Part shown: positions 16,314 to 42,415 of the stretch, one piece after another
How the letters are laid out: each line of letters starts with the position of its first letter
Numbering within the stretch: position 1 is the first letter of the stretch
Sequence record: OR142618.1
DNA length: 64,000 nucleotides
Direction: 5' to 3' (one strand)
Translations under genes and position numbers: made by a program
Notes under the pieces: model-generated
Seen by the model: the letters and a program-made list of their open reading frames with translations, nothing else
What the model was told of the DNA's origin: nothing
Databases searched by the model: none

Positions 16314-17540
16314 ATGTCGAAAGAAACATGCTCTTATTGCAATAAAGGCAAAGATGATGTGTCTAAGTTGTTTCGTAGCCCTGCTAAATATGGATCAAAT
16401 GTATATATATGTGACCAGTGTGTAACTCAGTGCAACAATTTTTTAGAAACTGCTGAAACAAATGATCGGGAATCTAATAAATTAGAAATAAAATACACAC
16501 CTGAAGAACTAAAGGAATTGCTAGATAAAGACATTGTAGGGCAAGATCACGCAAAAGAATTACTAAGTCTAGCAGTGTATAATCATTATAAACGGGTAAA
16601 CTATAACGCTACTGAACATGATGTAGAGTTATCTAAATCTAACATAATGCTACTGGGACCTTCAGGCAGCGGTAAGACATTTTTAATATCTAGTATATCT
16701 AAATTGTTAAACATACCTTTTGTTTCTGTAGATTCTACTTCGCTAACAGAGGCAGGATATGTCGGCGATCATGTAGAGACTATATTTACTAGATTAATCG
16801 CAGAAGCAAATGGTGACATAGAACTAGCGCAACGTGGAATCGTATTTATAGATGAAATAGATAAGAAACGTTCTAAAAAAGGAACAAATTCTGCAGGATC
16901 TGATGTTTCCGGCGAAGGTGTCCAACAGTCTTTACTTCGGGTGCTAGAAGGAACAACAATTAAGTTAGAACTAAATTCTAACAGTATGTTTAGTCCTAGA
17001 CAGGAAATTATGTTTGACACAACTAACGTTTTGTTTATAGTTGGCGGCGCATTTATAGGATTAGATGCAGTAATAAATAAAAGACTTAGTTCTACTAAAT
17101 CTCAAATGGGATTTGGTTCCGAAGCTGGTAAACCCATAGAAGGTAGTTTATTCTATGTAGAACCGGAAGATTTGTATACATACGGTTTTATAAGAGAATT
17201 TGTAGGGAGATTTCCTGTTCTTATTGCGTTTCATGATGTAACAGAGACTATGCTTCGTCGAATTCTAGTAGAGCCTAAAAGTTCTATACTTAAACAATAT
17301 CAAACTATGTTTAAATTAGATAACATTGAATTAGAATTCGATGAAGATTTTATAAAATCTGTTGCTACTACAGCGTTTAATAGGAAAACAGGCGCACGTG
17401 GTTTAAGAACTATTTTAGAAAAAGAACTATCTAGTATAGCATATAGATTGCCTTCTATAAGACGAGAAGGGTTTAGCAAGATTATTATACACGAACTAGG
17501 AAAACATAATTTCATAAAAGGGCAAAATGAAGACATTTAA
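16314..17540 (+). CDS. clpX: ATP-dependent Clp protease ATPase ClpX
   Basis: CSYC..C..C zinc finger, GPSGSGKT, TEAGYVG, FIDEIDK, MGF docking loop, GARGLR. Confidence 0.96.
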   Translation: MSKETCSYCNKGKDDVSKLFRSPAKYGSNVYICDQCVTQCNNFLETAETNDRESNKLEIKYTPEELKELLDKDIVGQDHAKELLSLAVYNHYKRVNYNATEHDVELSKSNIMLLGPSGSGKTFLISSISKLLNIPFVSVDSTSLTEAGYVGDHVETIFTRLIAEANGDIELAQRGIVFIDEIDKKRSKKGTNSAGSDVSGEGVQQSLLRVLEGTTIKLELNSNSMFSPRQEIMFDTTNVLFIVGGAFIGLDAVINKRLSSTKSQMGFGSEAGKPIEGSLFYVEPEDLYTYGFIREFVGRFPVLIAFHDVTETMLRRILVEPKSSILKQYQTMFKLDNIELEFDEDFIKSVATTAFNRKTGARGLRTILEKELSSIAYRLPSIRREGFSKIIIHELGKHNFIKGQNEDI

Positions 17541-17733
17541 TATAATTACTGGTCTTACTGTAGAAGTAAGACACGATAACTTTAACCAAGCACTTAGAAC
17601 TTTTACTAAAAAGGTTCAAAATTCAGGAAAATTAAAAGAAGTTCGAGAACGCGAATTCTATGAAAAGCCTTCTGTAAAAAAGACAAAAGCTAAAAAAGCA
17701 GCAATTCAACGCCAGAAAAAGAAAAAAATATAA
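17527..17733 (+). CDS. rpsU: Ribosomal protein bS21
   Basis: V...NFNQALRTFTKKV...G.LKEVREREFYEKPS..K..AKKAA..R. Confidence 0.92.
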   Translation: MKTFNIITGLTVEVRHDNFNQALRTFTKKVQNSGKLKEVREREFYEKPSVKKTKAKKAAIQRQKKKKI

Positions 17734-17735
17734 TA

Positions 17736-18071
17736 ATGGATCTTTGCAGAATTTTAAATAATGAACTTATGTTTTGCAGAAATCGTAGGAATAAACTCTA
17801 TTATAGCATCCGGCAATTGAATAACGTTGACATTCCTGTAGATCCTGCAGATTCTTTACTTATTTTCAGCATAAAAAAGGATATAGAACAGCTCCAATCT
17901 TATAAAGATGTTATATCCGAATGCAGCAGACTTGAACAACGTATAATCTGTATAGATAAAACTGTGCAGCATATCCGTCGGTATTGCAACCACGAATTTG
18001 TGTATCACAATACTAATTATCATACAAATACAGATGCAGAAAAATGCATTTATTGCGGATTAATAATTTAA
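17736..18071 (+). CDS. Hypothetical protein, C-terminal Cys/His cluster
   Basis: CNHEF...KCIYCG. Confidence 0.55.
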   Translation: MDLCRILNNELMFCRNRRNKLYYSIRQLNNVDIPVDPADSLLIFSIKKDIEQLQSYKDVISECSRLEQRIICIDKTVQHIRRYCNHEFVYHNTNYHTNTDAEKCIYCGLII

Positions 18072-18072
18072 T

Positions 18073-18543
18073 ATGGCATATTTTTCGACTAAGAGATTTG
18101 GACCTATTTCCACCGGTCATCGTCAATGGAAAGATACGGGTCATTGCAGCAGAATACACGGCTACGGAAGAACAGTGAAGATTATTTTTTCTGCTACTAC
18201 ATTAGATGATAAAATGTGGGTAGTAGATTTTGGTGGATTAAAAGATTTTAGGAAATGGCTTGAAGAACAATGGGATCATAATGTTTTAGTTGCATCTGAC
18301 GATCCCAAGTTAAATATACTTAAACAAATGGAACAAGAAGGTCTAGTTAAATTAAATATAATGGATGTTAAAAAAGGTCATGGTCCTGGGATAGAAGGTT
18401 CATGTAAGCATTTGTTTGACTATTTAAATCCTATTATAGAAAAGCATTCTGGCGGAAGATGTTGGGTCCATAGTATAGAAATATGGGAACACGAAAACAA
18501 TTCCGCTATATATGAAACGTATAAGTCAACATTTAAAAGATAA
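18073..18543 (+). CDS. Second QueD/PTPS-like T-fold protein
   Basis: GHRQW, CSRIHGY (HGH to HGY), VVDFG, DH, IWEHENNSA. Confidence 0.8.
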   Translation: MAYFSTKRFGPISTGHRQWKDTGHCSRIHGYGRTVKIIFSATTLDDKMWVVDFGGLKDFRKWLEEQWDHNVLVASDDPKLNILKQMEQEGLVKLNIMDVKKGHGPGIEGSCKHLFDYLNPIIEKHSGGRCWVHSIEIWEHENNSAIYETYKSTFKR

Positions 18544-18626
18544 ATAACATTAGTATTCCACGAGGAATACTATACAACGAGTGCCATATTGGGCTCACAC
18601 TATATCTTGCGTAAAGGAGATTAAAA
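18539..18626 (+). promoter_or_regulatory. Late promoter plus three-hairpin leader of hsp20 (ROSE-like thermometer candidate)
   Basis: GATAAATA; hairpins 18551-18572, 18579-18596, and TCTTGC able to pair with SD AAGGAGA (18605-18620). Confidence 0.55.
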
Positions 18627-19058
18627 ATGCAAAAACATGTTATAATGTCATCTAACCTAGCTAATTATAGATATGCACTAGGTGCAACTGATTTACTTAA
18701 TACTATTACTAATGAACTTAGTAGCCAGAAGTTTCCTCCCCATAATTTGATAAAGAATGCAGACGGTAGCTATTGTCTTGAATTAGCTCTTGCCGGTTAT
18801 GATAAATCCGAGCTAGATGTTTATGTAGATAGCAGAGAACGACTGTTAGTAATAGAAACAAAACCGGAACGAATTTTTAAAACTGAAGTAGAATACGAAC
18901 ACAAAGGTATTTCTAGTAAAGATTTTTCTGTCAAATTCAGACTTGTAGACGATCTTATAAATATATCTTCGTGCGGTATGAAAAATGGCATTCTAACAAT
19001 AAAAATTCAACCGCCAAGTCCTGCAGAATCACAACGAAAAGTAATTGATATAGAATAA
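18627..19058 (+). CDS. Small heat shock protein Hsp20 (IbpA-like)
   Basis: FPPHNL, LELALAG, Y.HKGIS, NGILTI. Confidence 0.92.
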   Translation: MQKHVIMSSNLANYRYALGATDLLNTITNELSSQKFPPHNLIKNADGSYCLELALAGYDKSELDVYVDSRERLLVIETKPERIFKTEVEYEHKGISSKDFSVKFRLVDDLINISSCGMKNGILTIKIQPPSPAESQRKVIDIE

Positions 19059-19065
19059 TGTTTAC

Positions 19066-19097
19066 AAATAAAAAGCTGGTATTCCAGCTTTTTATTT
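19066..19097. terminator. Bidirectional intrinsic terminator
   Basis: AAATAAAAAGCTGG-TATT-CCAGCTTTTTATTT. Confidence 0.85.
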
Positions 19098-19108
19098 TGC
19101 TATATAAC

Positions 19109-19136
19109 TTGACGACACTGTTTAAACATATATAAT
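19109..19136 (+). promoter_or_regulatory. sigma70-like promoter for clpS
   Basis: TTGACG-16 nt-TATAAT. Confidence 0.65.
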
Positions 19137-19172
19137 AATGTGTATCAATTACGATCAACTTGGGATTTAAAA

Positions 19173-19475
19173 ATGACTGTAAAGGTAGCTAATAAAGTTG
19201 AAACTTCGTCTACTGTATTTCAACCTAAGAAATATAATGTAGTTTTCCACAACGATAACAAAACCACTATGGAATTTGTTATGCAATTGTTAGTATATAT
19301 ATATGACTACGATGCATCTAGCGCATATAATACAATGATGGAAGTACATGAACGCGGCGCAAAGATTGTAGGCAGCTATACAAAAGAAATTGCAGAATCG
19401 AAACAGTCTAAATCTGTTCAACTTGCTATTAACAACGGTTATCCTGATTTTAAAGTAACTGTAGAAGAATCGTAA
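19173..19475 (+). CDS. clpS: ClpS N-degron adaptor
   Basis: PKKYNVVFHNDNKTTMEFV, MMEVHERG, EIAESK, V..EE; ATG 19173 preferred over 19140. Confidence 0.92.
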   Translation: MTVKVANKVETSSTVFQPKKYNVVFHNDNKTTMEFVMQLLVYIYDYDASSAYNTMMEVHERGAKIVGSYTKEIAESKQSKSVQLAINNGYPDFKVTVEES

Positions 19476-19549
19476 TACAGCAAAAACGGGGGTAGACACC
19501 TACCCCCTTCCCTATTATAATAAATAAAGCATATAGGGATATAAGAATT

Positions 19550-20098
19550 ATGAATGATTCCATAAAGAAATACATATCTATTGCAGAAGCTGCATCGTCC
19601 GTAAAGAAAATTCCTATCCCGTATTCCGTAAGTAGTCTTAGTCCTACTTTCTCTAAAGATTTAGTAGAACTACATTACGGAACACTCTATTCTAATTACA
19701 TATCTTCGGTAAACAAAGACCCCAGTAATAAATTTTCGTTTGCAGGTGCATACTTGCATGGAATTTATTTTAGTCAATTTACTGATTCTCAAAAAAGATA
19801 TTCTCCTTCCGGGATATTGTTAAAAGATATAAAATCTAAATTTACTTCATTTTCTAAATTTAAAAATGAGGTTATATCTGCATGCATGGATGTTCATGGT
19901 TCCGGATGGATTTATGTTTCTAATACCCTTGTAATAAAGGAAATCCCAAATCACGAAGTAAGAGACGATATATTCTTACTTATTGATTGTTGGGAGCATG
20001 CATATATGCTCGATTATAAAGCAGACAAGAAGTCATACTACGAGAATATATGGAATATATTTAATTGGGAATATCTGGAGGGTATGTATTCTCAATAA
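19550..20098 (+). CDS. sod: Fe/Mn superoxide dismutase with N-terminal extension
   Basis: PY...L.P, LHY, LHGIYF, GSGW, DCWEHAY, NW; TAAATA at 19521. Confidence 0.92.
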   Translation: MNDSIKKYISIAEAASSVKKIPIPYSVSSLSPTFSKDLVELHYGTLYSNYISSVNKDPSNKFSFAGAYLHGIYFSQFTDSQKRYSPSGILLKDIKSKFTSFSKFKNEVISACMDVHGSGWIYVSNTLVIKEIPNHEVRDDIFLLIDCWEHAYMLDYKADKKSYYENIWNIFNWEYLEGMYSQ

Positions 20099-20117
20099 AT
20101 AACTTCGGTGAATACTT

Positions 20118-20402
20118 ATGAGAACTAAAAAGCATTGGGATGAATGCCTCTTTTCTTTATCTTATGAAACTGCACAACACATGGCATTTGAATTAAAGGA
20201 ATTTGCCAAGCAAGCAGGATTTAATCCAAACGGTATTAAAGTATTGTCGAAAAAACAAATTCATAAATATGTAAAAGCTGATGCAGCTATTATGTGGGGC
20301 GAAGGTCCAGAGTGTTGGGCTAATTCGTTATTGTTTAAAGATTTATTAGGAGTATACGTATCTACCTATAAGGGTAACACAATTCTATTTCATGACAGGT
20401 AA
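20118..20402 (+). CDS. Hypothetical protein
   Basis: 94 aa; TAAATA at 20096. Confidence 0.55.
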   Translation: MRTKKHWDECLFSLSYETAQHMAFELKEFAKQAGFNPNGIKVLSKKQIHKYVKADAAIMWGEGPECWANSLLFKDLLGVYVSTYKGNTILFHDR

Positions 20403-20411
20403 TGCAAATAA

Positions 20412-20705
20412 ATGATAGATATACACACTATTGGAAAAGATTACACAGTAATCAATAAAAGAAATGGTGTATCTGTAACAGTTAGTGTGGTATTTTATAA
20501 AGATATTTTACGCAATATAAAACCATATTCTATAACTCAACCTATAGACCAATATGTAATTTATGTTTGTGAACAAATTAAACCAACTAAACCATATCAC
20601 TGGCATACTAATTATTCGGAAACTATTAACTTAGAACATTTAATAAAAGAAACATTACAGAATAATAAACAATTATTAATAATACAAGATTTATATACAG
20701 ACTGA
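20412..20705 (+). CDS. Hypothetical protein
   Basis: 97 aa ORF. Confidence 0.5.
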   Translation: MIDIHTIGKDYTVINKRNGVSVTVSVVFYKDILRNIKPYSITQPIDQYVIYVCEQIKPTKPYHWHTNYSETINLEHLIKETLQNNKQLLIIQDLYTD

Positions 20706-20772
20706 TATGGATAGCTTTTGCAACAAGAAGCTTGAAGATCGACACAAACGCATGACGTAATAAGGATTATAA

Positions 20773-21000
20773 ATGAAAACATTTGATTTTACTTTTGGAG
20801 TATATAGAGCTAAACAGTGTGAATGGAAAGGAAATTCTAAAACACAATGCGGAGCAAAACCTATAGAAGGAAAAGCATATTGTTTAGAACACTTTAAAAA
20901 GGCATATGTTAATATTTCTGAAGAAATGTTAGATAAACAAACAGAAGCACAGTTAAAGAAATTAGAAAAAGAAATGCCTGTGGTAATCGAAGAAGAGTAA
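20773..21000 (+). CDS. GcrA C-terminal-like Cys/His protein
   Basis: CEW......CG......YC.EH...AY resembles GcrA CRWP..CG..YC..H..AY. Confidence 0.55.
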   Translation: MKTFDFTFGVYRAKQCEWKGNSKTQCGAKPIEGKAYCLEHFKKAYVNISEEMLDKQTEAQLKKLEKEMPVVIEEE

Positions 21001-21031
21001 AAACAATCCCCGCAATTGCGGGGATTGTTTT
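21000..21031. terminator. Perfect 32-bp palindrome terminator
   Basis: AAAACAATCCCCGCAATTGCGGGGATTGTTTT. Confidence 0.85.
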
Positions 21032-21045
21032 ATAAGGAGATAAAA

Positions 21046-21690
21046 TTGGAACTTAAAACAAATGAGCAGAAATCTATAATAGGAACATTTGCAACTTTAA
21101 TGTTAACTAGAATATTTGCAGCCGCTGGCGCATATTTAGCATTAACTATGCCAATTCTTAATATGAATTTACTTGTGTGTATATTTTCATATTTTGCTAT
21201 AATGTTTATTATAGATTGTATTAGAACAAATGTGTATGTGTCTATTGTAGGGAGTGTATTTTTATTATTTTGGCAAGGAATAACATTGGGGAATGGATTA
21301 ACTGCGTTACTGGGGGAAGTAGCGCCATTATTAGTTTTAGTTATGTTTACTATAAGTTCGTTTTTATATATGTTTCTTTGTGCAAACGCAATTATGTCAA
21401 AAAACATTTTTAGTTTCGCGTCGTCATTTAATGTTTCTATAGCAATGACTTTGCTTGTGACTATAGTAATGTCCATATTATTAGATCTATCAGTCAGTTA
21501 TTGTATAGGCAGTATGATAATAAACGTGATTAATTGCGTGGTAATACTCAAAACATTAGAAGATTGTATAAACGAAAAATGTGAAAATATATCTATGCAA
21601 AAACTATCTACAACTGTAGTATTATTTTGGTACGATACAATAATGGAGTCTATAGAGAAACTTTTAAAACTATTTACATATAAGCGGTAA
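21046..21690 (+). CDS. Divergent BAX inhibitor-1/YccA-like multi-pass membrane protein
   Basis: About 7 hydrophobic segments; C-term LFWYDTIMESIEKLLKLF aligns by eye with BI-1 LYLDxINLFxxLLxI; TTG start after AAGGAG; directly upstream of ftsH. Confidence 0.55.
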   Translation: MELKTNEQKSIIGTFATLMLTRIFAAAGAYLALTMPILNMNLLVCIFSYFAIMFIIDCIRTNVYVSIVGSVFLLFWQGITLGNGLTALLGEVAPLLVLVMFTISSFLYMFLCANAIMSKNIFSFASSFNVSIAMTLLVTIVMSILLDLSVSYCIGSMIINVINCVVILKTLEDCINEKCENISMQKLSTTVVLFWYDTIMESIEKLLKLFTYKR

Positions 21691-21730
21691 ACAGTTATAT
21701 TACACACATAACCCCTTATAGGATCAAATA

Positions 21731-23461
21731 ATGCAACATATTGTTAAGTTCATAAAAAATAACAGATTTATTATTTTATTTCTTGTAATATGCATAACTG
21801 GACTTGCGTTAACGATTAATTACAAGCCGACTAGTGTGTCTATAAACACCTTTTTATCAGACGCAACGAGCGGTAAAATAATTAGTGTTAAATTAAAAGA
21901 AGATGGACAAACACTACAGTATACTACTAATACCTCAGACAGAAGAAAAGTAACATTCCCCGGAGATACCAGTAAATTAATAGAATCATTTCTTGAAGCA
22001 GGTGTTCCTGTAATAACAGAAGAACCTTCTACTCCTAGTCCATTCCTTACTAGTTTGGTGTCTGGACTTATAGTAATGTTAGTATTTTTAATTTTAATGG
22101 TATTCGTTTTGAAGCGAATGGGTCCTGGCTCTTCATTAGATGCAAAAAGTAAATCTAAACTTCGCAAGATAGAACCAAAAGACATTGAAGTAACATTTAA
22201 TGATGTAGCTGGTCACACTCATGAAATAAATGAAGTAAAAGAGTTAGTTGATTTTATTGCTCATCGATCTAAGTATTCTAGTATGGGAATAGATGTGCCT
22301 CGTGGAATTCTAATGCACGGCAGTCCAGGCGTCGGAAAAACACTTTTAGCAAAGGCAATGGCAAAAGAGGCAAATGTTAATTTTTTCTATGTTGCCGGAT
22401 CTGAGTTTAATGATACATTTGTTGGTGTGGGTGCAAACCGTGTAACAGATATGTTTAAAAAAGCAAAGGAAGCTGCGCCGTGCATTATTTTTATAGACGA
22501 AATTGATGCACTTGCACAACAACGTTCTACTAAAATATCTAATGGGTCAGACCAAACACTCAATCAGTTATTAGTAGAAATGGACGGAATGCAAGATAAC
22601 GACGGTATTACAATTCTTGCAGCTACTAATAGACTAGATATATTAGATCCGGCTGTCATTCGTCCTAAACGATTTGACAGAATTGTTCAACTAAGTTTAC
22701 CTGATGTGGGGATTAGACAGAAGATTTTAGAAATAAATGCAAATGGAAAAACATTTGAAGACAATGTAGATTTTTCAGTAATAGCAAAAGGAACTCCTGG
22801 ATTCTCTGGTGCTGAGTTAGCTAAACTAGTCAATGAGGCTGCAATCTATGCAGTAAGGTCTGGACAAACTGTAATTACCCAGGAGCATATAGAACGAGCA
22901 AAAGATAAGGTGTTAATGGGTGAAAATTCGACAAAGAAATATACCCAAGAAGAATTGCTTCGTACTGCATACCATGAAGCCGGTCATGCAATATCGGGTG
23001 TAATTTACAAATCCAATGATAACTTGCATAAAGTATCTATCATTCCTCGAGGTCTAGCACTAGGTGTAACTGTATTTCTTCCTAACGAAGAGCCTTCTGT
23101 TAGCAAAGAGCAGCTCATGAATAAATTAGTTACTTTAATGGCAGGCCGTGCAGCAGAAGAACTCATATACGGTGAGTCTGCAATATCCACCGGCGCAAGT
23201 TCAGATATAAAGAGAGCAACTGAACTTGCAGTATACATGACTACATCGTGTGGTTTCGGTAGTATAGGACCGGTTGCGACATCGACCCTGTCTAGTTTGC
23301 AATCTAGTGCAGAACAAGATGCAGCAATTCTAGTAAAAGATGCGTACAATAAGGCTATAACATTACTTTCGGATAAAAAGGCTGAATTAAAACTTGTAGC
23401 AGACTTGTTAATGGAAAAAGAAACAATAGATTGTGCAGAAGTAGAACAAGTTCTTGCATAA
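21731..23461 (+). CDS. ftsH: ATP-dependent zinc metalloprotease FtsH
   Basis: Two N-terminal TMs, [39 protein letters not shown]. Confidence 0.97.
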
Positions 23462-23488
23462 TATTAAGTAATTAAATAAGGCACTATT

Positions 23489-24859
23489 ATGATTCGTACA
23501 ATTTTAGACGAAATCGGAAATACTACTAAACGAACTACTAAATTAGCTATTCTAGAAAGAAACAAGGATAATGACACATTAAAAAAAGTAATACATTTGG
23601 CATTAAATCCATTTATTAACTTTTATATAAAGAAAATACCAGAATTCACGCGAACAGATACCATTCTTACCTTAGAACAAGCACTAACCGAATTATCTGT
23701 TCTATCTGATAGAATAAAAACAGGTAATGCTGCAATATTGCATCTAACATATATTCTTTCTAGTTTAACAGATGACGATGCAAATGTAATTATTCGGATT
23801 ATTAGAAAGGATTTACGCGCAGGGATACAAGATGCTACAGTTAATAAAATATGGAAGGATCTAGTACCTAAATATCCGTGCTTGCTAGCAGAACCCGCAA
23901 CAGAAACTCTTCTTAGTAAATGCAAATTACCATATTATTCTCAGATAAAATCAGACGGAACTAGAATTAATATTCATGTTAGTAAATCCGGAATTGTTTC
24001 ATTTTATGGAAGATCGGGTAAATCATACGATTTTAAAGATATTTTAGATGACGCATTTGTTTCGCTAATTAAATATTTCGACGAAGATATGGTTTTTGAT
24101 GGCGAATTAATAGTTGTAGATTCTAATAATAATATACTCCCCAGACGGACAGGAAACGGTATCATAAGTAAAGCACAAAGTGATACCATTACAGATAATG
24201 AAATAAAGAATGTAAGAGCAATTCTTTGGGATTGTATTCCTCTTAGATGTTTTAATGAACATAAATGCACTACACCCTATTCTAGTAGATTCGAAAGTTT
24301 ATCAAATGCAATACATAAATTGCAAGTAGATGATGATTATATAGAAAGTAAAATATATAATACTATTTTAGGAAATATAGGGCAAATTAGGTTAGCAGAA
24401 ACTCGTCTCCTTTATAGCAAAGAGGAAGTAAAAATCTTCTTCGACGAAGCAATATCTAGAAACGAAGAAGGCATAATGGTAAAATGTCCTGATAGTATAT
24501 GGGAAAATAAACGAAGTAAGTTAGTATTAAAATATAAATCAGAAAAAGTATGCGAATTAATTGTAACTGGGTTTAATTACGGAACAGTAGGTACTAAAAC
24601 AGAACATAAAGTTGGATCATTAATATGTGAAAGCTCAGACGGTAAGGTAATAGTCAACATATCTGGTTTAACTGACAGCGAACGCGATGATGCAACAGCA
24701 AATTTTGAAAATAAATGGAAACATAGCATAGTGAGTGTTATGTATAATGAAAGAATTAAAAGCGTAGACCGAATGGATGTTGATTCGCTTTTTCTTCCTA
24801 GATTTTTAGAAATAAGAACAGATAAATTTGAAGCAGATTCTAGCAAAGATATAAAATAA
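23489..24859 (+). CDS. ATP-dependent DNA ligase (T4 gp30-like)
   Basis: KSDGTR, FDGEL, EGIMVK, WENKRS, KYK, SLFLPRF. Confidence 0.95.
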   Translation: MIRTILDEIGNTTKRTTKLAILERNKDNDTLKKVIHLALNPFINFYIKKIPEFTRTDTILTLEQALTELSVLSDRIKTGNAAILHLTYILSSLTDDDANVIIRIIRKDLRAGIQDATVNKIWKDLVPKYPCLLAEPATETLLSKCKLPYYSQIKSDGTRINIHVSKSGIVSFYGRSGKSYDFKDILDDAFVSLIKYFDEDMVFDGELIVVDSNNNILPRRTGNGIISKAQSDTITDNEIKNVRAILWDCIPLRCFNEHKCTTPYSSRFESLSNAIHKLQVDDDYIESKIYNTILGNIGQIRLAETRLLYSKEEVKIFFDEAISRNEEGIMVKCPDSIWENKRSKLVLKYKSEKVCELIVTGFNYGTVGTKTEHKVGSLICESSDGKVIVNISGLTDSERDDATANFENKWKHSIVSVMYNERIKSVDRMDVDSLFLPRFLEIRTDKFEADSSKDIK

Positions 24860-24868
24860 GGATATTTT

Positions 24869-25030
24869 ATGATAAATGTAGGCGACGATGTTATTATTAA
24901 AACCGAATTTGGCGAGACAAGCGGCATTGTTATAAAATTTATATCTAATAAAACTATTGCTATAGTAGAATTAGAAGACGGTAACGAAATAGAAATAGGC
25001 AAAGGCGACTTAGAGTTGAGTAATAAATAA
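24869..25030 (+). CDS. Small beta-barrel-like hypothetical protein (53 aa), not in ORF track
   Basis: AAGGA RBS; MINVGDDVIIKTEFGETSGIVIKF...DLELSNK; fills the gap after ligase. Confidence 0.6.
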   Translation: MINVGDDVIIKTEFGETSGIVIKFISNKTIAIVELEDGNEIEIGKGDLELSNK

Positions 25031-25049
25031 TAAAAAAGGATATATTATT

Positions 25050-25559
25050 ATGACATTACCTTCTTCAGGTTCTCTTTCTACACAGCAAATTAACGTTGAA
25101 TTAGGAAATCCACAAGATGCTCGGTTAGATGTAAACGCTGCCGAAATGAGGATATTATGTGGTGCAGCAACTACAGGGCAAGTAAGTATTGCTGGCGCAT
25201 ATGGTAGAATGCCAACAGGACAATATATATTAACTTCTGCTCAGTTGCAAGCTGCACCGAATGCCCAATATGGATATAGAGTGTTTGCAACAGGTTCTAA
25301 AATAAACAATATTGTTTTTAAAGGATACAATTTAACTATAGTTGCATGGAATGATTACGATAAAGTGCTAGGAATAGGTGTCGATCAAACTAATGCACCA
25401 ACCAACTTAGTAACTAATTTCTGGAGTTCTGTAACTGGTTATTTAGGTGCACCAACACAATATACTTCAGATTTGGGAGGTAATACAGTATACGGATGGA
25501 CCTGGAATGGTACAAATCCATTCCCTGTATCTTCGGTTCAAATGGTGCAAATTGTGTAA
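25050..25559 (+). CDS. Putative tail/virion-associated protein
   Basis: MTLPSSG.LS..QINVELG N-terminus typical of phage fibre-associated proteins; TAAATA at 25024. Confidence 0.55.
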   Translation: MTLPSSGSLSTQQINVELGNPQDARLDVNAAEMRILCGAATTGQVSIAGAYGRMPTGQYILTSAQLQAAPNAQYGYRVFATGSKINNIVFKGYNLTIVAWNDYDKVLGIGVDQTNAPTNLVTNFWSSVTGYLGAPTQYTSDLGGNTVYGWTWNGTNPFPVSSVQMVQIV

Positions 25560-25588
25560 AATAAAAGGGCATTAAGCCCTTTTATTTT
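25557..25588. terminator. Intrinsic terminator
   Basis: AAAATAAAAGGGC-ATTAA-GCCCTTTTATTTT. Confidence 0.8.
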
Positions 25589-25655
25589 ATCATAATTGTG
25601 TATATATTTTATATATTTGGTGTTATAATGTATACAATAACAAGAGAATATTATA

Positions 25656-26429: not shown

Positions 26430-26455
26430 AAATGCCCCGTACGGGGCATTTTTAT
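26426..26455. terminator. Bidirectional terminator between convergent genes (perfect 30-bp palindrome)
   Basis: ATAAAAATGCCCCGTACGGGGCATTTTTAT. Confidence 0.85.
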
Positions 26456-26823
26456 CTATCCATAATATTTCCGGGACCATATGGAATATCGTTGTATTGT
26501 TTATAACTAGGATCTATTTTTTGGTAAGGCTCAAACGGTAATCCTGCACGTTCTTTTGCCATTTGTAAACCTCTAAAACCAGGAGATTGTGTATCGTCGT
26601 TTTTTGGATGATTATTAAATGGTTTGTTGGCAGGATTTTTCGGAATAGTTTTAAATACAGGAGTCGGTCCGTCACCTGTCATACCCAAAACTGCATATCT
26701 CTTAATCTGTTTTTGATTATTAGTATATAATTCTGGATTGTAAAATGCATCAATGTCAGTGTTTGCAGCACCGTACAATTCTATATGTGTTTTATTTTCT
26801 AGTATTATTTCTTTTATTTTCAT
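26452..26823 (-). CDS. Hypothetical late protein with MKIKEIILE N-terminus
   Basis: Minus-strand GATAAATA at 26836-26829 ends 5 nt before ATG 26823. Confidence 0.6.
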   Translation of the reverse strand: MKIKEIILENKTHIELYGAANTDIDAFYNPELYTNNQKQIKRYAVLGMTGDGPTPVFKTIPKNPANKPFNNHPKNDDTQSPGFRGLQMAKERAGLPFEPYQKIDPSYKQYNDIPYGPGNIMDR

Positions 26824-26857
26824 AACAATATTTATCATACTAAACTTTAATTATAAC

Positions 26858-26886
26858 TAGACGATGTATAATAACATTGCTATTAT
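26858..26886 (+). promoter_or_regulatory. sigma70-like promoter for clpP
   Basis: TAGACG-17 nt-TATTAT. Confidence 0.55.
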
Positions 26887-26919
26887 ATACACAACGTAAA
26901 CAAACACAGGACTTATTAT

Positions 26920-27591
26920 ATGAGCTACAATTATACAGCACAAGGACAATATCCTACCGAAGCTGGTTTGATCCCTATGGTTGTCGAAAATAACGGCAAC
27001 GGCGAACGTAGTTGGGATATTTATTCCCGTCTTCTAAAAGAGCGTATTGTTTTTCTTAATGGTCCAGTTCGCGACGAGATGGCATCCGTAATTGTTGCCC
27101 AGCTTCTTTTCCTCGAATCGGAATCGGCAGAACAGCCCGTTTCGATGTATATTAACTCTCCGGGCGGCAGCGTTACTGCTGGTTTGTCTATTTATAACAC
27201 GATGGAATATATTTCGTGTCCCGTTAATACCATCGTGTTGGGCCAAGCATGCAGTATGGGGTCTTTCCTAGCACAAGCAGGTACTCCGGGGCATCGTTAC
27301 GTGTCTAGCGAATCCCGCACTATGATTCATCGAGCCAGCGGCGGCTTCGGGGGATTCGGCGGCACAACTCAACAAGTTGAGTTAGGAATTGAAGATGCTG
27401 TCCGCCATGCGGCAGAACTATCTAAAATTAACAAGCGTCTCACTGAGCTGTATGTTCATCATAACACTGCTGGCAAGACGTTCGACGAATTTATCGAAAT
27501 TATGAAATTCGACACATTCCTCTCTGCTCAAGAAGCAGTTGAGTTCGGGTTGGCAGACAAAGTATTCCGCACTAAAGCTGACCTGAAGTAA
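26920..27591 (+). CDS. clpP: Clp protease proteolytic subunit
   Basis: [21 protein letters not shown], catalytic S (ACSMG), H (MIH), D (KFDTF). Confidence 0.97.
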
Positions 27592-27617
27592 CTATTCACT
27601 GTAGCTGGTGATAATTT

Positions 27618-33397: not shown

Positions 33398-34105
33398 ATG
33401 TTTGCTGACGTACAAGGGTTTTATTCTTTTAAAAGAAAATTTAAAACACACGTTCTTACTTCTGTATTAAAAGAAACTGAATGGGAAATTATAATTGGAT
33501 TCGTTCCTGCAAAGGATGCAAGCAACGGAGAAGATTTAATTGATTTTGAAGTTCAAAAAAATATAATAGATTACTGGATTTCTAATTACGTAGAAGGCAG
33601 TATTATCGTTGATATGAGCGATACTAGAATTTCTATGTTGTATGATATAGCAGAAAATAACATAATAGGTGTTCCTAGTTTTCCTAAAGATTTAAAAACG
33701 CTAGCAATGGTTTTTCATTCTAAGATTTCATCTATAACAGATGGTAAGCTATCTATAGGCGACATTATTATATCAGACGATAGTAATTTTAGTTACACAT
33801 TTGGAAAACATGTAGATGAAATATACGATCTTCCTACAATAGACGATATGTTTCCTAATGAAGATGAAAAACCTATATGGGACGTGCCGTGGTGGGATAG
33901 GGTTGATGTAGATACATTTGATTATGTTCCTGATTTAGAAAATCGTACATTAGAAGAAGTACAAATGTCTGTTTGTACAAGACATGTGTTAAATGATATT
34001 AACGATAAGTTCGAAGCTGCAATAAAAGAAGAATTGGGTATAAATGTAGAAGCTGAAGACAATGTTGTAGACATAGTTGATGTTTTAAATGAACGACAAA
34101 TATAA
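33398..34105 (+). CDS. Hypothetical protein
   Basis: 235 aa, acidic, coupled to DnaE fragment gene. Confidence 0.65.
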   Translation: MFADVQGFYSFKRKFKTHVLTSVLKETEWEIIIGFVPAKDASNGEDLIDFEVQKNIIDYWISNYVEGSIIVDMSDTRISMLYDIAENNIIGVPSFPKDLKTLAMVFHSKISSITDGKLSIGDIIISDDSNFSYTFGKHVDEIYDLPTIDDMFPNEDEKPIWDVPWWDRVDVDTFDYVPDLENRTLEEVQMSVCTRHVLNDINDKFEAAIKEELGINVEAEDNVVDIVDVLNERQI

Positions 34106-34598
34106 TAGAAAAGAAATAACTATATCAACAGGCATAAATATCCTTTTGCAAGGGAACCAGCTGGGAGATCCACTCTTTGTTGACAACGAAGACATAAACA
34201 AGTATAATATGCACGTAGAACAAGTGTTAGGGTTGCATAAACTTAATACAACGAAACACTTAACCTGTTCTGTTGATGAATTTCATGAAAAAATGTCTTC
34301 AGAATGGTTTATGCCACCGGAATTTAAAAATATAGATATAGATTCTTTTATATTAAATTTATGTGACACTAATGCACAAAAAGAAAGAGTATTAATGGAA
34401 CTGAAACTCTTTCAAGAACGCGGTTTATACAATATGCTAAGATTTATGATATATTTTGTATCATATATGAGGGAAAATTGCCTTATCTGGGGTGTGGGTC
34501 GCGGGTCTAGTGTTGCATCTTATGTATTATTTTTAATAGGCGTGCATAAAGTAGATTCACTAAAATATAATTTAGATATAAAAGAATTTCTAAAATAA
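34089..34598 (+). CDS. Stand-alone fragment of DNA polymerase III alpha (DnaE)
   Basis: ERV..EL..F...G...ML, GVGRGSSVASYVLFLIG...VD.LKY.L...EFL; stops before the PDID catalytic motif. Confidence 0.8.
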   Translation: MNDKYNRKEITISTGINILLQGNQLGDPLFVDNEDINKYNMHVEQVLGLHKLNTTKHLTCSVDEFHEKMSSEWFMPPEFKNIDIDSFILNLCDTNAQKERVLMELKLFQERGLYNMLRFMIYFVSYMRENCLIWGVGRGSSVASYVLFLIGVHKVDSLKYNLDIKEFLK

Positions 34599-34953: not shown

Positions 34954-35280
34954 ATGAATATAATACCACTTCATAACAATATTATTGTAACTAATTTTAA
35001 AAAAGGCGAACGCACGGTAGGCGGTATTATTTTTACAGATGATAACGGTAAGTCACACGGCATCCGCGCTCGGTGGGCACAAGTATCCCATATAAGAGAA
35101 GATCAAAAAGATACATTTGTTGTAGGCCAATGGGTGTTAATTAAGCACGGTCGCTGGTCCCGTCCAGTACACACTACAGATCAAAATGTATATTACTGTG
35201 CTGAAATAGATTCTATTTTATTGATATCCGATGAAGAGCCAGAAGACAATATAATAGTAGAAACACGAGTTTATAATTAA
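34954..35280 (+). CDS. groES: GroES-like co-chaperonin
   Basis: I.PL.NNIIV, T.GGII mobile loop, VG..VL, I.L. Confidence 0.75.
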   Translation: MNIIPLHNNIIVTNFKKGERTVGGIIFTDDNGKSHGIRARWAQVSHIREDQKDTFVVGQWVLIKHGRWSRPVHTTDQNVYYCAEIDSILLISDEEPEDNIIVETRVYN

Positions 35281-37209: not shown

Positions 37210-37227
37210 GGGTTTAATAATTAGACA

Positions 37228-38193: not shown

Positions 38194-38727
38194 TTGGATA
38201 GTAAAATGAACAAACACAATGCAGATACTGCTAGAGAGAATTTAGTTCAAATAGCAGGAAATAATAAAGTATTAGATATGCTCATAGAATTAGAAAAAAC
38301 ATTAGATAACTGTAATGTGTTTTCTTATGCAAATTGGAATAAAGGAGAATTAGTTGCCGGACCCTTTATTTCTAGATATTGGGTTACTACTACTTGGATG
38401 TACAATGAAAAAGATATGCCAGATCCCGATGCAGGATTGCGTTTACTAAAATACGGTTGCAAAGTAAAGTACGAAAGGGATGTTTTTTTAGAACCAAAAA
38501 AAGTAACAGGTAGACCTGACTACGAAAACCCATCCACTAAACAAGCAAAAATAGAAGAATTGCCTATTTGGTTAGTGACAATAACTATGCCTAGGAAATT
38601 TATAGACGAAGCAATAATAGATGGCATGCAGGATTTCTCTAACGTAGATGATATAGATCCTAGTGCAATAGCTGATGTAGAAGCAGCAGGCGAAAACGGA
38701 ATAAACGATGTAGATGGAAATCTATAA
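38194..38727 (+). CDS. Hypothetical late protein (ATG may be 38206)
   Basis: GATAAATA at 38175-38182; NW.KGELV.GP...RYW. Confidence 0.6.
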   Translation: MDSKMNKHNADTARENLVQIAGNNKVLDMLIELEKTLDNCNVFSYANWNKGELVAGPFISRYWVTTTWMYNEKDMPDPDAGLRLLKYGCKVKYERDVFLEPKKVTGRPDYENPSTKQAKIEELPIWLVTITMPRKFIDEAIIDGMQDFSNVDDIDPSAIADVEAAGENGINDVDGNL

Positions 38728-38756: not shown

Positions 38757-39458
38757 ATGTTAGCTAGACACTCATTAAAAGGAACCGTATTACCTATAAT
38801 TTCGGTGGATGAGTATATGCCTAAATCTGGAACACAGGAAGAAGTTATAGTCATTGCATTCTATACCATTGACGAAGACCCTGCGTTTGATTTAGACGAT
38901 TTTATAGAAAAAAGTTTTATAGAAGTATTAGATGTTGATGTAAGTCCCAATCCCGACGAAAACGGAAATTATTTAGTATTTGTAGAATTAAAAAGAAAAG
39001 CAGGCTTCTTTGAAAAATTTTACAAGATTATAAAAGATGTAGAAAATGTTTCTGGAAAGCAAGACTGGTTAGTGAAGGCATATCTTTGTAACGAATTACT
39101 ACCATACAATGACGAAAGACTATTAGATTATATAATATTACTAGGTGACGAAGAAGCATCAATAACAGAAAGTGTAATATCTATGCTTACTGATAGCGAT
39201 ATATCTTCTGCTCACATAGATGATTCTAGAATATACATATCTAATTCTCATAGAACAGTAAGTTTTGAGCCATTGTATATAGGCGAAACAGCATTTAATA
39301 GTTTAAAACTAAATGAATGTGCTATAGAACTATCTAATGTAGATAGTAATGTTGCTTTATTATCGGCATTTTTAGGTAAAAAATGGGAAGTATATAAACT
39401 AAACGAATATATAATACTTCAACACCAATCTAAGCAACCTATTATAGCCAAATTATAA
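38757..39458 (+). CDS. Hypothetical protein
   Basis: 233 aa; [20 protein letters not shown]. Confidence 0.6.
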
Positions 39459-39496: not shown

Positions 39497-40186
39497 ATGA
39501 AGAATTGGCAAACAATCCTTGGCGTATCTGCTAATCCCACAGAAAAACAGATAAAGACTGCATATAGAAAACTTGCATCAAAATATCATCCTGACAGAAA
39601 TAAAGATAAAGATGCAGAAAACATGTTTAAACAAGTAAGGGAAGCATACGAATATGCAATAAAATGGATTTCTATTAAAACAGAACAATACACAGATACA
39701 GTATATATTCCATTAAAATACCAAAATAAAGGCGGCAAATTCAAGACAGCTAATCATAAATTTATTATAGAAATTCCGCCACATTTCCCTCATAATTCAC
39801 AAAAAATAATAATAGTAAACAATTCTATATTATTAGTTACTGTAATATTCATACATGATACATTTTCTATAGCTCAAAATGGAATAGATGTATATGCAAC
39901 TATTTCTGTAGAAAGTCTCGACATAATTATGGGTACAGAAATAATAGTTGAGCATCCGTACGGAAATAAGATAAAAGTAGGTATACCTACATCATTTGTA
40001 TCTGGATCTAAAATACTAGTGAAGAATAAAGGTATTAAGAATACATATACAGTAAACAATATTTTAGAAACCATAACAGGTCATTTGTATATAACTGTCA
40101 ACATGTTCACAAAAGTTCGTTTGACTAAAAGTAGCGATACTAGTATACTACTAACGTACAAAGCAAAACCATACACAATCTCGTAA
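39497..40186 (+). CDS. J-domain protein (DnaJ/CbpA-like, no zinc finger)
   Basis: ILGV, IK.AYRKLA.KYHPD, F..V.EAYE; partial DnaJ-C region. Confidence 0.9.
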
Positions 40187-40195
40187 GGGGTACAC

Positions 40196-42415
40196 ATGGA
40201 TAGCCAAAAGAAACTGAATACCGTACTTACTGAAGCAAAAAAACTTGCAGTAAGTCACCAACACGAAGCCATTACTTCAGATCATGTATTGTATGTTTTA
40301 TTAGGATACGACGAAGTAAAGGACTGTGTTAAAAACTGCAATGCAGACCCGGATCAATTAACTAAAGCAGTATCTGATTTCCTTGTTACCCAGTTGGGAA
40401 AATCCCGACACATAACTGATATGAATATTGATATCAGTCCCTCTCTTAGTCGCTGGTGCCAGCAATTGGCAACTAAAATTGCATTAGATCCTAACAAAGC
40501 AATGACGTATGTCGATATGCTCGATGCACTCATCAAAGACACCAGTTGCAATGCAAGCCAGCTTCTCGCGCACTATGGTGTTACTACTGCTGTAGTAACT
40601 GAAGCGAAGAAATCTGCAGAAGCAGAATCCCTCATAAAGTCGTTTACTCGCAATCTTAACGACGAAGTATCTGAAGGCAAAATCGATCCGGTTATCGGCC
40701 GGGAAACTGAACTAGAAGAAGTTATCGAAGCCCTCGCCCGCCGGCGAAAAAACAATTGCATTCTTACCGGCAAAGAAGGTGTAGGTAAGACGGCAATTGC
40801 CGAAGGGTTGGCGATGAAAATCGTCAATGGTGAGGTCCCTGAAGCAATTGCTGACAAACAAGTTATTTCACTCGATATCGGCGCGATGATGGCAGGCACT
40901 AAATATCGCGGCGAGTTCGAAGAGCGTATGAAAGCGCTGCTAGACGAACTAAAAGCAATGAAAAATGCCATCGTCTTCATTGACGAAATACATATGATCA
41001 TGGGCGCCGGTGCAAGTAATGGTTCGTCAGTAGACGCTGCTAACCTGCTCAAGCCAGAATTGGCAAAAGGAACACTTCGTTGCATAGGCGCAACTACCTA
41101 CGACGAATATAGTACACACTTCGAAAAAGATCGGGCATTAATGCGTCGGTTCCAAAAAGTGGATGTTCCGCCGCCTAGTGTAGGCGACACTAAAAAAATA
41201 GTTGCCGGACTAAAGCAATATTACGAAGAGTTCCATGGCGTCAAATACGACGTAGGGACTCTAGATCTAGCAGTCGATTTGACTGAACGATACATCAAAA
41301 CTCGGCACCAGCCCGACAAATCAATCGATGCAATAGACCTTGTCGGCGCCAGAGCTAAATTAGCAGGGATTTCTACCATTACCGAGCGTATGGTCATAGA
41401 AACTGTAGCTAAACTAGCTCATATGCGTCCGGAAATGTTAGATAACACCGAAAACGACACTATTGCTCGTCTAGAAGGTAACCTCAAACACGATGTGTTT
41501 GGGCAAGACGAAGCCATTAACAAGCTCTGCGAAGCAGTGATGGTACACAAAGCAGGACTTCGAGATGCTAATAAACCTATCGGTAACTTCTTATTAGTAG
41601 GTCCGACCGGTACTGGCAAAACGTTCTTGGCAAAAAAACTATCCCAACATATGGGTATTCCATTAGTGCGGTTCGATATGTCTGAATACCAAGAACAGCA
41701 TAGCGTCGCCCGGCTGCTGGGCGCGCCGCCCGGATATGTAGGGCACGGGGAAGGTGAAGCCGGCGCTGGGCAGTTAATCTCTGAGATTGAAAAAAATCCC
41801 AACTGCATCTTGTTGCTAGACGAAATCGAAAAAGCACACCCGAAGGTATTTAGTACATTCCTTCAAGTGATGGATGACGCCCGGCTAACTTCGTCAACTG
41901 GCAAAACTGTATTCTTCGGTAACGTTTTGCTACTAATGACATCTAATTCCGGCGCCGCACAAGCTGCTAAAGCATCAATCGGATTTGGAAATAATTTTAA
42001 CGACGGTGCAATAGATAGCGCAGTTACAAAAGGATTTGCGCCTGAATTCCGGAACAGGCTCGACGGCATTGTTAAGTTCTCGGCGCTCACTATTAACGAA
42101 ATGTCTAAGATTGTAGACACTGAGTTTGCTAAAGTGCAAGCAAGTGTACTAGAAAAAGGCGTATCGTTGATCCTTACCCAAGAAGCACGTCAAAAATTAG
42201 CAACAGATGGATATGATCCCAAGATGGGAGCCCGTCCGCTCGCGAGGCTGTTCCAAGAGAAAGTCAAGTTGCCGCTGTCAAAGCTGATGCTACTTGGCGA
42301 TCTTAAAAATGGCGGTCACGCAGAAGTCAGGGTAGTAGCAGACGAAGTTGTAGTTATACAAGCAATTGCCCCTGCCACTAAAGCTAAAAAGAAAATAGAC
42401 CAAACTGTAGTTTAA
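40196..42415 (+). CDS. clpA: ATP-dependent Clp protease ATPase ClpA
   Basis: Clp-N; AAA1 GKEGVGKT/IDEIH; AAA2 GPTGTGKT/LDEIEKAH; IGF loop; no ClpB middle domain; GARPL.R. Confidence 0.95.
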   Translation: MDSQKKLNTVLTEAKKLAVSHQHEAITSDHVLYVLLGYDEVKDCVKNCNADPDQLTKAVSDFLVTQLGKSRHITDMNIDISPSLSRWCQQLATKIALDPNKAMTYVDMLDALIKDTSCNASQLLAHYGVTTAVVTEAKKSAEAESLIKSFTRNLNDEVSEGKIDPVIGRETELEEVIEALARRRKNNCILTGKEGVGKTAIAEGLAMKIVNGEVPEAIADKQVISLDIGAMMAGTKYRGEFEERMKALLDELKAMKNAIVFIDEIHMIMGAGASNGSSVDAANLLKPELAKGTLRCIGATTYDEYSTHFEKDRALMRRFQKVDVPPPSVGDTKKIVAGLKQYYEEFHGVKYDVGTLDLAVDLTERYIKTRHQPDKSIDAIDLVGARAKLAGISTITERMVIETVAKLAHMRPEMLDNTENDTIARLEGNLKHDVFGQDEAINKLCEAVMVHKAGLRDANKPIGNFLLVGPTGTGKTFLAKKLSQHMGIPLVRFDMSEYQEQHSVARLLGAPPGYVGHGEGEAGAGQLISEIEKNPNCILLLDEIEKAHPKVFSTFLQVMDDARLTSSTGKTVFFGNVLLLMTSNSGAAQAAKASIGFGNNFNDGAIDSAVTKGFAPEFRNRLDGIVKFSALTINEMSKIVDTEFAKVQASVLEKGVSLILTQEARQKLATDGYDPKMGARPLARLFQEKVKLPLSKLMLLGDLKNGGHAEVRVVADEVVVIQAIAPATKAKKKIDQTVV

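Follow-up and report, generated by a model that had tools for sequence, protein, structure and literature searches.

Chaperone and protease genes of PA5oct-like jumbo phages: a vertically inherited set with a probable role beside host proteostasis

Nine chaperone and protease genes in the Callisto genome

Pseudomonas phage Callisto (OR142618.1, 286,854 bp; genus Wroclawvirus, PA5oct-like) carries nine chaperone and protease genes between positions 16,314 and 42,415 of the stretch of 64,000 nucleotides analyzed here, which we call the window (a window coordinate equals the record coordinate minus 62,000). A preliminary description had placed ClpX, ClpA, ClpP, ClpS, FtsH, a YccA-like protein, an Hsp20, a J-protein and GroES within these 26 kb. 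All nine genes are located, intact and on the + strand, at or near the positions that it gave, with a weak Bax1-I match for the YccA-like protein and a borderline Cpn10 match for GroES. The 25-kb core is 100% identical to Callisto and 98.5-99.5% identical to ten further PA5oct-like jumbo phages, including MIJ3, Paride, Cassandra, Deifobo and Ettore. The gene set is vertically inherited and typical of a lineage of T4-related jumbo phages (RaK2-like/group 2.2 and uncultivated aquatic relatives), and Wroclawvirus has added to it one two-gene cassette, the Bax1-I-like gene and ftsH. Statements on clades are based throughout on identity levels, shared indels and synteny.

The nine genes are among about 45 annotated in the 26 kb and are not contiguous, being interleaved with genes of queuosine and nucleotide metabolism, replication and the virion. 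The clustering is real, since the rest of the 287-kb genome has no further annotated chaperone or ATP-dependent protease except oligopeptidase A and a MoxR-like/VWA pair; rough scan-statistic arithmetic, performed post hoc, gives about 1e-7 under random placement. The genes had been presented as one system, and this part of the description does not stand, as they do not form one operon. Comparison with IMG/VR loci and with a 207-kb uncultivated marine contig (Logan SRR5007141_23751) resolves at least four neighborhoods that are conserved independently: ClpX-bS21…Hsp20-ClpS-superoxide dismutase (SOD); ligase…exonuclease-ClpP; a GroES-like gene adjoining the clamp loader; and PhoH…DnaJ-ClpA. A scan for sigma-70 promoters returns 66 sites against 65.6 expected, which is no enrichment. 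Terminator-like hairpins are enriched in 15000-28200 (14 against 5.7 expected), and strong hairpin-plus-T sites of this kind lie at 27618-27637, directly after clpP, and at 21000-21031, just upstream of the Bax1-I-like gene.

Each of the nine genes is under strong purifying selection. Between Callisto and PA5oct they accumulate 126 synonymous and 12 non-synonymous differences (dN/dS, the ratio of non-synonymous to synonymous rates, 0-0.06), the proteins are at least 98.6% identical across all 11 members of the genus, and alignment to the E. coli reference proteins finds every catalytic and mechanical motif in place. In PA5oct the homologues of FtsH and ClpP have been detected by electrospray tandem mass spectrometry (ESI-MS/MS; MK797984.1), and ftsH is transcribed throughout infection (PA5oct paper). 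Selection, detection and transcription together argue that these are working genes. Among ClpX, ClpA, ClpP, ClpS, FtsH, Hsp20, DnaJ and GroES only ClpX passes its curated equivalog cutoff in NCBIfam, and the sub-cutoff scores of the other components fit long-diverged viral lineages (Pfam, NCBIfam and PHROG profile scores are given in bits; GA is the Pfam gathering score).

The Clp components, their co-chaperones and their neighbors

ClpX (16314..17540) matches Pfam zf-C4_ClpX (40.6), AAA_2 (87.3) and D2-small, and scores 455.6 bits on the NCBIfam equivalog NF003745 against a cutoff of 359. Its alignment presents the C4 zinc-binding domain, one AAA+ module, Walker A and B motifs, the GYVG pore-1 loop, sensor-II and the Arg finger; its gene differs from that of PA5oct at 23 synonymous and 2 non-synonymous sites. 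The docking loop MGF noted in the preliminary description is borne out by residue mapping, with M-G-F at E. coli positions 268-270. IMG/VR holds 75 viral contigs with a ClpX relative; across these 75 homologues the predicted ClpP-docking tripeptide [IMLV]-G-[FI] is present and GYVG is invariant. The residues that contact the ssrA degron in E. coli ClpX are Tyr153, Val154, Thr199, Val202, Arg228 and His230 (PMC7652416). The phage protein keeps positions 153, 154 and 202 and has Gly199, Ser228 and Phe230, so that S-M-F at 228-230 replaces the RKH loop. None of the 75 viral homologues has an RKH loop, and many delete the loop.

The stop codon of clpX is overlapped by a gene for ribosomal protein bS21 (17527..17733, +; Pfam Ribosomal_S21, 57.5 bits), which is not a proteostasis gene. 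It adjoins ClpX in 57 of the 75 IMG/VR loci, for which flanks were fetched, and also in the marine contig; in phages Atu_ph07 and Phosso the place that bS21 has in Callisto is taken by IF3. It seems to be general in these viruses that clpX has a gene for a translation factor at its side. On either side of clpX lie genes of the 7-deazaguanine/queuosine pathway, one for GTP cyclohydrolase I and two that are PTPS/QueD-like (15021-16296 and 18073-18543), and the order folE-PTPS-ClpX is kept in viral contigs.

ClpP (26920..27591) is an S14 peptidase by Pfam (202 bits, GA 20.2). The Ser-His-Asp triad reported earlier is indeed intact: Ser112, His137 and Asp198 are present and invariant in the ClpP alignment, and the gene has 11 synonymous and no non-synonymous differences from PA5oct. 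The protein is 48% identical to E. coli ClpP, 48-49% to host P. aeruginosa ClpP1 and 47-50% to solved ClpPs. It stays below the NCBIfam cutoffs (236 against 249 bits for NF001368; 213 against 308.6 for TIGR00493), consistent with a divergent viral clade. The best relatives are metagenomic proteins of 205 residues, 66-69% identical, several of them on contigs of 200-350 kb with the order ligase-exonuclease-ClpP, and at least 574 IMG/VR contigs carry a ClpP relative. Among genome contigs, a scan for ClpP returned six short ones from metagenome-assembled genomes (MAGs) and no more. All aligned metagenomic members of the clade share an insertion of about 10 residues in the handle (about residues 141-160, from the strand of the catalytic His to helix E), His-Arg-(Val/Ala)-Ser in place of His-Gln-Pro-Leu, Lys-Phe-Asp at the catalytic Asp, and a further two-residue insertion. 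Only the last of these four features is found in the ClpPs of Atu_ph07 and Phosso. By these features the phage ClpP is placed in a putative virus-specific clade with a long handle. An AlphaFold2 monomer model (predicted local distance difference test, pLDDT, 87.4) has the canonical ClpP fold, in which helix E, 32 residues long, comes after a loop of 13 residues, and Foldseek superimposes it on solved ClpPs with template-modeling (TM) scores of 0.80/0.92, the latter normalized to the solved structures. The handle of ClpP forms the ring-ring interface. An insertion at this interface may prevent mixed tetradecamers with host ClpP.

Prohead proteases of tailed phages share the ClpP/crotonase fold, and PHROG and some GenBank records label this clpP as "head maturation protease". 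We considered such a role for this protein and rejected it: it is a full-length canonical ClpP with the N-terminal axial-loop residues, 48-50% identical to cellular ClpPs. Its score on the NCBIfam model for ClpP-related head maturation is 88.9 bits against a cutoff of 120, and PA5oct has a separate prohead protease of the T4 type, gp152 (PA5oct paper).

Downstream of clpX lie an Hsp20/IbpB-like holdase (18627..19058) and ClpS, the adaptor of ClpA (19173..19475; open reading frame, ORF, from 19140), in an order common to Atu_ph07, Phosso and the marine contig. Hsp20 has an alpha-crystallin domain (Pfam HSP20, 40.6 bits, GA 20.8; PHROG 432, 89.9 bits; IbpB equivalog, 70.9 bits against a cutoff of 207), and its gene has 6 synonymous and no non-synonymous differences from PA5oct. 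ClpS (Pfam ClpS, 76.8 bits, GA 23; NCBIfam, 63.8 bits, below the cutoff of 149) is 100% identical in 11 of 11 genus members. Its N-degron pocket keeps N34, D35, T38, M40 and H66 (E. coli numbering) and has N for D at position 36, in the motif N-D-N-K-T-T-M. Directly after clpS, and in the same place in the marine relative, is a Fe/Mn SOD-like gene (19550-20098, +) whose PA5oct homologue has been detected by mass spectrometry. It is followed by an ORF at 20118-20402 with a sub-threshold match to the Tox-MPTase3 metallopeptidase (21.2 bits, GA 25).

The altered recognition elements of ClpX, with no RKH loop and Gly for Thr199, and the variation at pocket position 36 of ClpS would be in keeping with a redirection of degradation, by the phage unfoldases and ClpS, to specific host regulators or defense proteins. 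For phage ClpP and ClpS, an action on host proteins was suggested by Iyer et al. We nevertheless judge host takeover or counter-defense to be an unlikely function of the set. No adaptor-like or degron-bearing partner is identified and no substrate is known; the deep conservation and stable synteny differ from the patchy distribution with fast turnover that is typical of anti-defense genes; and DefenseFinder reported no anti-defense system in PA5oct.

The second unfoldase, ClpA (40196..42415), is preceded by the gene of a J-domain protein (39497..40186). ClpA matches Pfam Clp_N (30.4), AAA_lid_9, AAA_2 (177.9) and D2-small (74.1); its 739 residues align over the full length with E. coli ClpA (43.8% identity), with the N-domain, Walker A and B motifs in D1 and D2, the KYR and GYVG pore loops, and no M-domain. 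TIGR02639 is its best family over the full length (791.5 bits, cutoff 993.15). The docking loop IGF, also reported earlier, is confirmed as S-I-G-F-G where E. coli has S-I-G-L-I, and it is retained almost universally in viral ClpA. The gene differs from that of PA5oct at 37 synonymous and 2 non-synonymous sites, and at least 597 IMG/VR contigs have a ClpA relative. The J-protein (Pfam DnaJ, 62.9 bits, GA 27.8; DnaJ_C, 30.3 bits) is 229 residues long, with HPD at residues 31-33, a single partial DnaJ_C domain and no match to the zinc finger. It is not a class A DnaJ (TIGR02349, 88.6 bits against 377), and its best PDB matches are the zinc-finger-less DnaJ2 and CbpA. Its gene is upstream of ClpA in 64 of the 80 IMG/VR loci whose flanks were fetched.

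The genes around this pair bear on the main rival explanation for the DnaJ-ClpA block, in which general proteolysis would not be their purpose. The main task of DnaJ-ClpA, perhaps joined by ClpP, and of the GroES-like protein would instead be to fold, unfold or load the capsid and the very large structural proteins, much as gp31 of T4 acts together with the GroEL of its host. The pair sits between virion structural genes by PHROG, with products detected in PA5oct virions. Upstream, two genes at 38194..38727 and 38757..39458 (both +; PHROG 12928 and 13138, "virion structural protein") travel with it in 21/80 and 27/80 viral ClpA loci, and the PA5oct homologue of the first product is marked structural by ESI-MS/MS (MK797984.1). 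Immediately downstream, the gene at 42533..42967 (+; PHROG 13657; "structural protein, ESI-MS/MS" in PA5oct) is present in 44/80 of these loci. An ORF of 2236 residues follows at 42981-49691 (+); its product may belong with the giant structural proteins reported in PA5oct. In phage 121Q a ClpA-like gene lies between tail and structural genes, and in Atu_ph07 a tail fiber gene is about 1.6 kb downstream. ClpA, together with PhoH, is a core gene of another large-phage lineage, the Cpn10-like protein matches the PHROG "head morphogenesis", and the same role has been proposed by Iyer et al. Virion assembly thus has to be taken seriously, and we give it perhaps one chance in a handful, or slightly better. 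It leaves unexplained ClpS, which is dedicated to N-degron delivery, as well as the separate ClpP with its intact triad, ClpX and FtsH. The near-universal IGF loop of viral ClpA argues for a peptidase partner, and PA5oct has the prohead protease gp152 besides.

The GroES/gp31-like protein (34954..35280, next to the clamp loader) is a candidate co-chaperonin with a borderline match to Pfam Cpn10 (21.8 bits, GA 21.1) that spans profile positions 1-68 of 93. It scores 30.8 bits on PHROG 931 ("head morphogenesis"), 27.4 bits on PHROG 3188 ("co-chaperonin GroES") and 23.2 bits on the GroES model of NCBIfam, far under the cutoff of 128. Upstream, a 169-residue ORF (34089-34598, +) matches no more than a fragment of the NTPase domain of DNA polymerase III alpha (36.8 bits) and has the same position in the marine relative. 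The PA5oct label "polyubiquitin-like protein", which belongs to about 31382-31642 of the window, has no Pfam support.

The FtsH cassette and the inheritance of the set

FtsH (21731..23461) is a membrane AAA+ zinc protease (Pfam FtsH_ext 32.3, AAA 144.6, Peptidase_M41 154.7) with two transmembrane helices, a periplasmic domain, Walker A and B motifs, the FVGVG pore loop, the second region of homology, and HEAGH with its Glu ligand. It aligns with E. coli FtsH at 45% identity, its C-terminus is shortened, and its score on TIGR01241 (551.8 bits) is just under the cutoff of 600. Directly upstream is the gene of a polytopic membrane protein (21046..21690), Bax1-I/YccA-like and a candidate substrate or modulator of FtsH, with 9 synonymous and 1 non-synonymous differences from PA5oct. 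Its Pfam Bax1-I match is at 21.2 bits (GA 34.1), and it has no match in NCBIfam or PHROG. Among 1.84 billion representative proteins a single relative is found, 28% identical (P0122), itself at 32.9 bits and so under the same GA of 34.1. The two-sequence alignment has no match among PDB profiles, and an AlphaFold2 model from it displays seven helices at low confidence (pLDDT 43.5).

P0122 is encoded on a metagenomic contig of 2.6 kb directly upstream of an FtsH of equal length, which is 51% identical to the phage FtsH. FtsH and a candidate modulator, as first described, are therefore genuinely linked, the two-gene order recurring in this independent element at 51% identity for the protease and 28% for the partner. 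Viral collections have hardly any FtsH relatives: IMG/VR has them on two small contigs, and Microcystis phage MaAM05 is the one cultured phage beyond the genus that seems to be a true phage carrier. The next relatives are bacterial, mostly from Gammaproteobacteria (42-44% identity). With its gene order recurring in a metagenomic contig and the next relatives bacterial, the pair behaves like a unit of two genes that are inherited together and that entered the Wroclawvirus lineage from outside. In Callisto this unit is inserted immediately upstream of the ligase, and it is the sole difference within the backbone relative to the marine contig. The second-closest FtsH relative is a protein of 880 residues with two AAA modules (45% identity), encoded at 6005-8647 of a 10-kb metagenome contig (L277) beside ExbB-ExbD-TonB, a CCA-adding enzyme and ribosomal protein S20. 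According to the account of Kihara et al. 1998 given in PMC12048511, YccA, of the Bax1-I family, is a substrate of E. coli FtsH and a YccA mutant interferes with degradation by FtsH. By analogy, a modulator or substrate role would be the natural one for the phage protein.

The backbone itself can be followed far beyond the genus. The marine contig is collinear with the whole region: GTP cyclohydrolase I, PTPS, ClpX, S21, Hsp20, ClpS, SOD, two small genes and ligase are followed by four genes, RNase T exonuclease, one reverse gene and ClpP, and about 25 kb beyond ClpP by a pol III alpha fragment, clamp loader, PhoH (reverse), two genes, DnaJ and ClpA. Hsp20 and ClpS likewise come a few genes after ClpX in Atu_ph07, Phosso and SCTP-2, where ClpA has either the J-protein gene upstream of it or PhoH at a distance of a few genes upstream. 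Co-occurrence across jumbo phages, which the preliminary description had proposed as a check, is thus found for the ClpX and ClpA clusters in these three phages, for gene pairs in the IMG/VR loci and for the whole region in the marine contig.

This distribution speaks to whether the genes are recently captured host genes of little consequence, that is morons or decaying copies. The proteins look host-like, and the GC content at third codon positions (GC3) of clpP (0.438) and clpA (0.412) is above the genome median of 0.227. With a MoxR-like AAA+ gene (GC3 0.67; record 142656-143771) and a metallopeptidase-VWA gene (0.51; record 146657-147841), a pair described for the same phage group by Iyer et al., they are the main outliers in codon composition outside the 200-235 kb region, and all four are AAA+ chaperone/protease components; clpX, clpS, ftsH, hsp20 and dnaJ are not outlying. 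The GC3 of clpP and clpA equals that of the same genes in the marine relative, where, at 42% GC, they are not outliers; the excess may reflect translational selection or replacement by an unsampled relative. No close bacterial donor was found: the best ClpA relative is at 54% identity, ClpP is at 68% to viral relatives against 48-49% to the E. coli and host ClpPs, and the nearest bacterial FtsH is at 42-44%. We reject recent capture, which is scarcely credible on identity levels, synteny and selection: identity to the E. coli or P. aeruginosa proteins is only 44-49%, viral proteins come closest, synteny is kept across distant phages, dN/dS is 0-0.06 and the catalytic motifs are all intact.

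The set had also been put forward as under-described, and here the earlier literature goes further than was assumed. The PA5oct record MK797984.1 names all nine genes, including an "FtsH-interacting integral membrane protein" (the Bax1-I-like gene) and a "chaperonin" (the Cpn10-like gene), and the GenBank record of Callisto likewise names all nine. In the papers on MIJ3 and PA5oct, FtsH (with TilS) is alone in being taken up as a host-like gene, and the Paride papers mention none of the nine. Attai et al. 2018 (PMC6102473) treat the Clp proteins and DnaJ of Atu_ph07, which has a matching set, in a section of their own and speculate that they help the host survive and clear aggregates. Iyer et al. 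list ClpP, ClpS, ClpA, ClpX, Hsp10, Hsp20 and DnaJ in jumbo phages of group 2.2. These records and papers do not bear out the view that the set is under-described. In the literature searched we found no earlier description of a viral ClpP clade with a long handle, of a viral ClpX without RKH, of the close pairing of ClpX with bS21 and of DnaJ with ClpA, or of the insertion point of the FtsH cassette.

The genus-specific addition of FtsH and its partner invites a connection with dormancy, as deep-dormant cultures yielded only Paride and phages closely related to it, and the Paride authors suggest that stored resources are mobilized. ClpXP, ClpAPS and FtsH, with an oligopeptidase A encoded outside the window (PrlC, peptidase M3, 352.6 bits; record OR142618.1 21527-23548), would then turn host protein and aggregates into amino acids and enable replication in deep-dormant P. 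aeruginosa. Enzymes of the oligopeptidase A class degrade peptides released by ATP-dependent proteases, and this one would take the Clp products towards amino acids. The full set is present in all genus members, and Hsp20 and SOD share one block. Resource mobilization strikes us as improbable all the same. What speaks for it is purely a correlation, since most of the set also occurs in many phages for which a dormancy phenotype is not known: Atu_ph07-like phages and hundreds from aquatic settings have the Clp, Hsp20 and DnaJ genes too. The Paride paper names none of these genes, and dormant cells are ATP-poor, which disfavors AAA+ proteolysis. A more elaborate form of this idea, which we hold to be more doubtful still, would combine the long-handle ClpP with the RKH-less ClpX, ClpA/ClpS, oligopeptidase A and the FtsH cassette into a machinery by which this genus, unlike all other phages tested, replicates lytically in deep-dormant, starved P. 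aeruginosa, and which liquidates host protein and aggregates and remodels the membrane proteome, with a ClpP core orthogonal to host ClpP1/ClpP2.

A supplement to host proteostasis, compared with known systems

The preliminary description had called the set near-complete and its matched ClpXP and ClpAPS machines autonomous. The parts list of the two machines is complete and intact (peptidase, two unfoldases, adaptor); neither the near-completeness nor the autonomy of the network is upheld. No dnaK, grpE, groEL, clpB, lon or hslUV is found among the 416 annotated Callisto features, a statement on the deposited annotation and not on an exhaustive profile search of ORFs. With DnaK and GroEL not annotated, the J-protein and the GroES-like protein should act through the host Hsp70 and Hsp60, and host partners should be needed.

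With moderate confidence, and from sequence comparison, we favor a vertically inherited supplement to host proteostasis that partly re-specifies it and does not replace it. In the proposed mechanism, hexamers of ClpX and ClpA would dock through their MGF and IGF loops on tetradecamers of phage ClpP, as the conserved motifs predict. ClpS would pass N-degron substrates to ClpA, membrane proteins would fall to FtsH, whose activity its membrane partner would tune, and Hsp20 would hold unfolding proteins; the J-protein and the GroES-like protein would recruit host DnaK and GroEL. The setting would be a long infection with collapsing host transcripts and giant virion proteins to fold. Host transcripts fall to 0.08-fold during PA5oct infection; on the favored reading the set would be needed because of this collapse and because very large virion proteins must be made. 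The RKH-less ClpX and the handle insertion of ClpP suggest that the phage proteases may have a substrate range and a peptidase core of their own. To our knowledge, phage-encoded AAA+ proteases have never been characterized biochemically.

Several points weigh against this supplementary role. The genes are not co-transcribed as a unit, and with replication, nucleotide-metabolism and virion genes all around them their purposes may be unrelated. ClpA, ClpP, ClpS and FtsH are below the NCBIfam equivalog cutoffs, and some functional drift is possible. We only infer, from the docking motifs, that phage ClpX and ClpA would pair with phage ClpP rather than with host ClpP. The absence of DnaK and GroEL is read from annotation. 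Marine relatives encode a Cpn60/GroEL-family protein (contig L026, 11912-12621, about 5 kb downstream of ClpP) that is not annotated in Callisto, which argues that dependence on the host chaperonin varies within the clade.

The long-handle ClpP and the RKH-less ClpX would mark out, within the Clp system, a large branch of viral proteins that counts hundreds of members in aquatic viromes, and the mapped genes are concrete candidates for a mechanism of replication in dormant cells. If they only assist virion folding, they are an ordinary standard module of group 2.2 jumbo phages.

Atu_ph07, from the same jumbo-phage group, also encodes ClpX, ClpA, ClpP, ClpS, DnaJ and Hsp20, with DnaJ directly upstream of ClpA and the order ClpX…Hsp20-(TK)-ClpS; its ClpP, ClpX and ClpA are 58%, 43% and 43% identical to those of Callisto. 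Unlike Callisto, it has ClpB and further Clp-like genes, a ClpP without the 10-residue handle insertion and R-K-N at the RKH position of ClpX, and it has no tblastn match to FtsH, hence no FtsH cassette. The E. coli FtsH/YccA pair, like that of the phage, comprises a membrane AAA+ zinc protease and a polytopic Bax1-I-like membrane protein. The phage genes differ in being adjacent and co-inherited, in an orphan partner below the Pfam threshold and in a C-terminally shorter FtsH, and HflK/C is not annotated in the phage.

T4 gp31 and the J-domain protein Rki of RB43 (PMC3486835) are co-chaperones of phages that work by way of the host's GroEL or DnaK. The Callisto proteins resemble them in the Cpn10-like matches to the PHROGs "head morphogenesis" and "co-chaperonin GroES" and in a J-domain with HPD; they differ in that the Cpn10 match is borderline and the J-protein, in tight linkage with ClpA, has a substrate-binding domain (DnaJ_C). 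The bacterial ClpXP/ClpAPS systems of E. coli and P. aeruginosa share with the phage proteins the domain architecture, Walker motifs, pore loops and docking tripeptides, the Ser-His-Asp triad, the ClpP fold (TM 0.92) and the ClpS pocket. Relative to these, at 44-49% identity, phage ClpX lacks Arg228, His230 and Thr199, phage ClpA has IGF for IGL and a shorter N-D1 linker, and phage ClpP has the handle insertion and His-Arg for His-Gln-Pro after the catalytic His; moreover, the phage clpS is not beside clpA, and clpP is not beside clpX.

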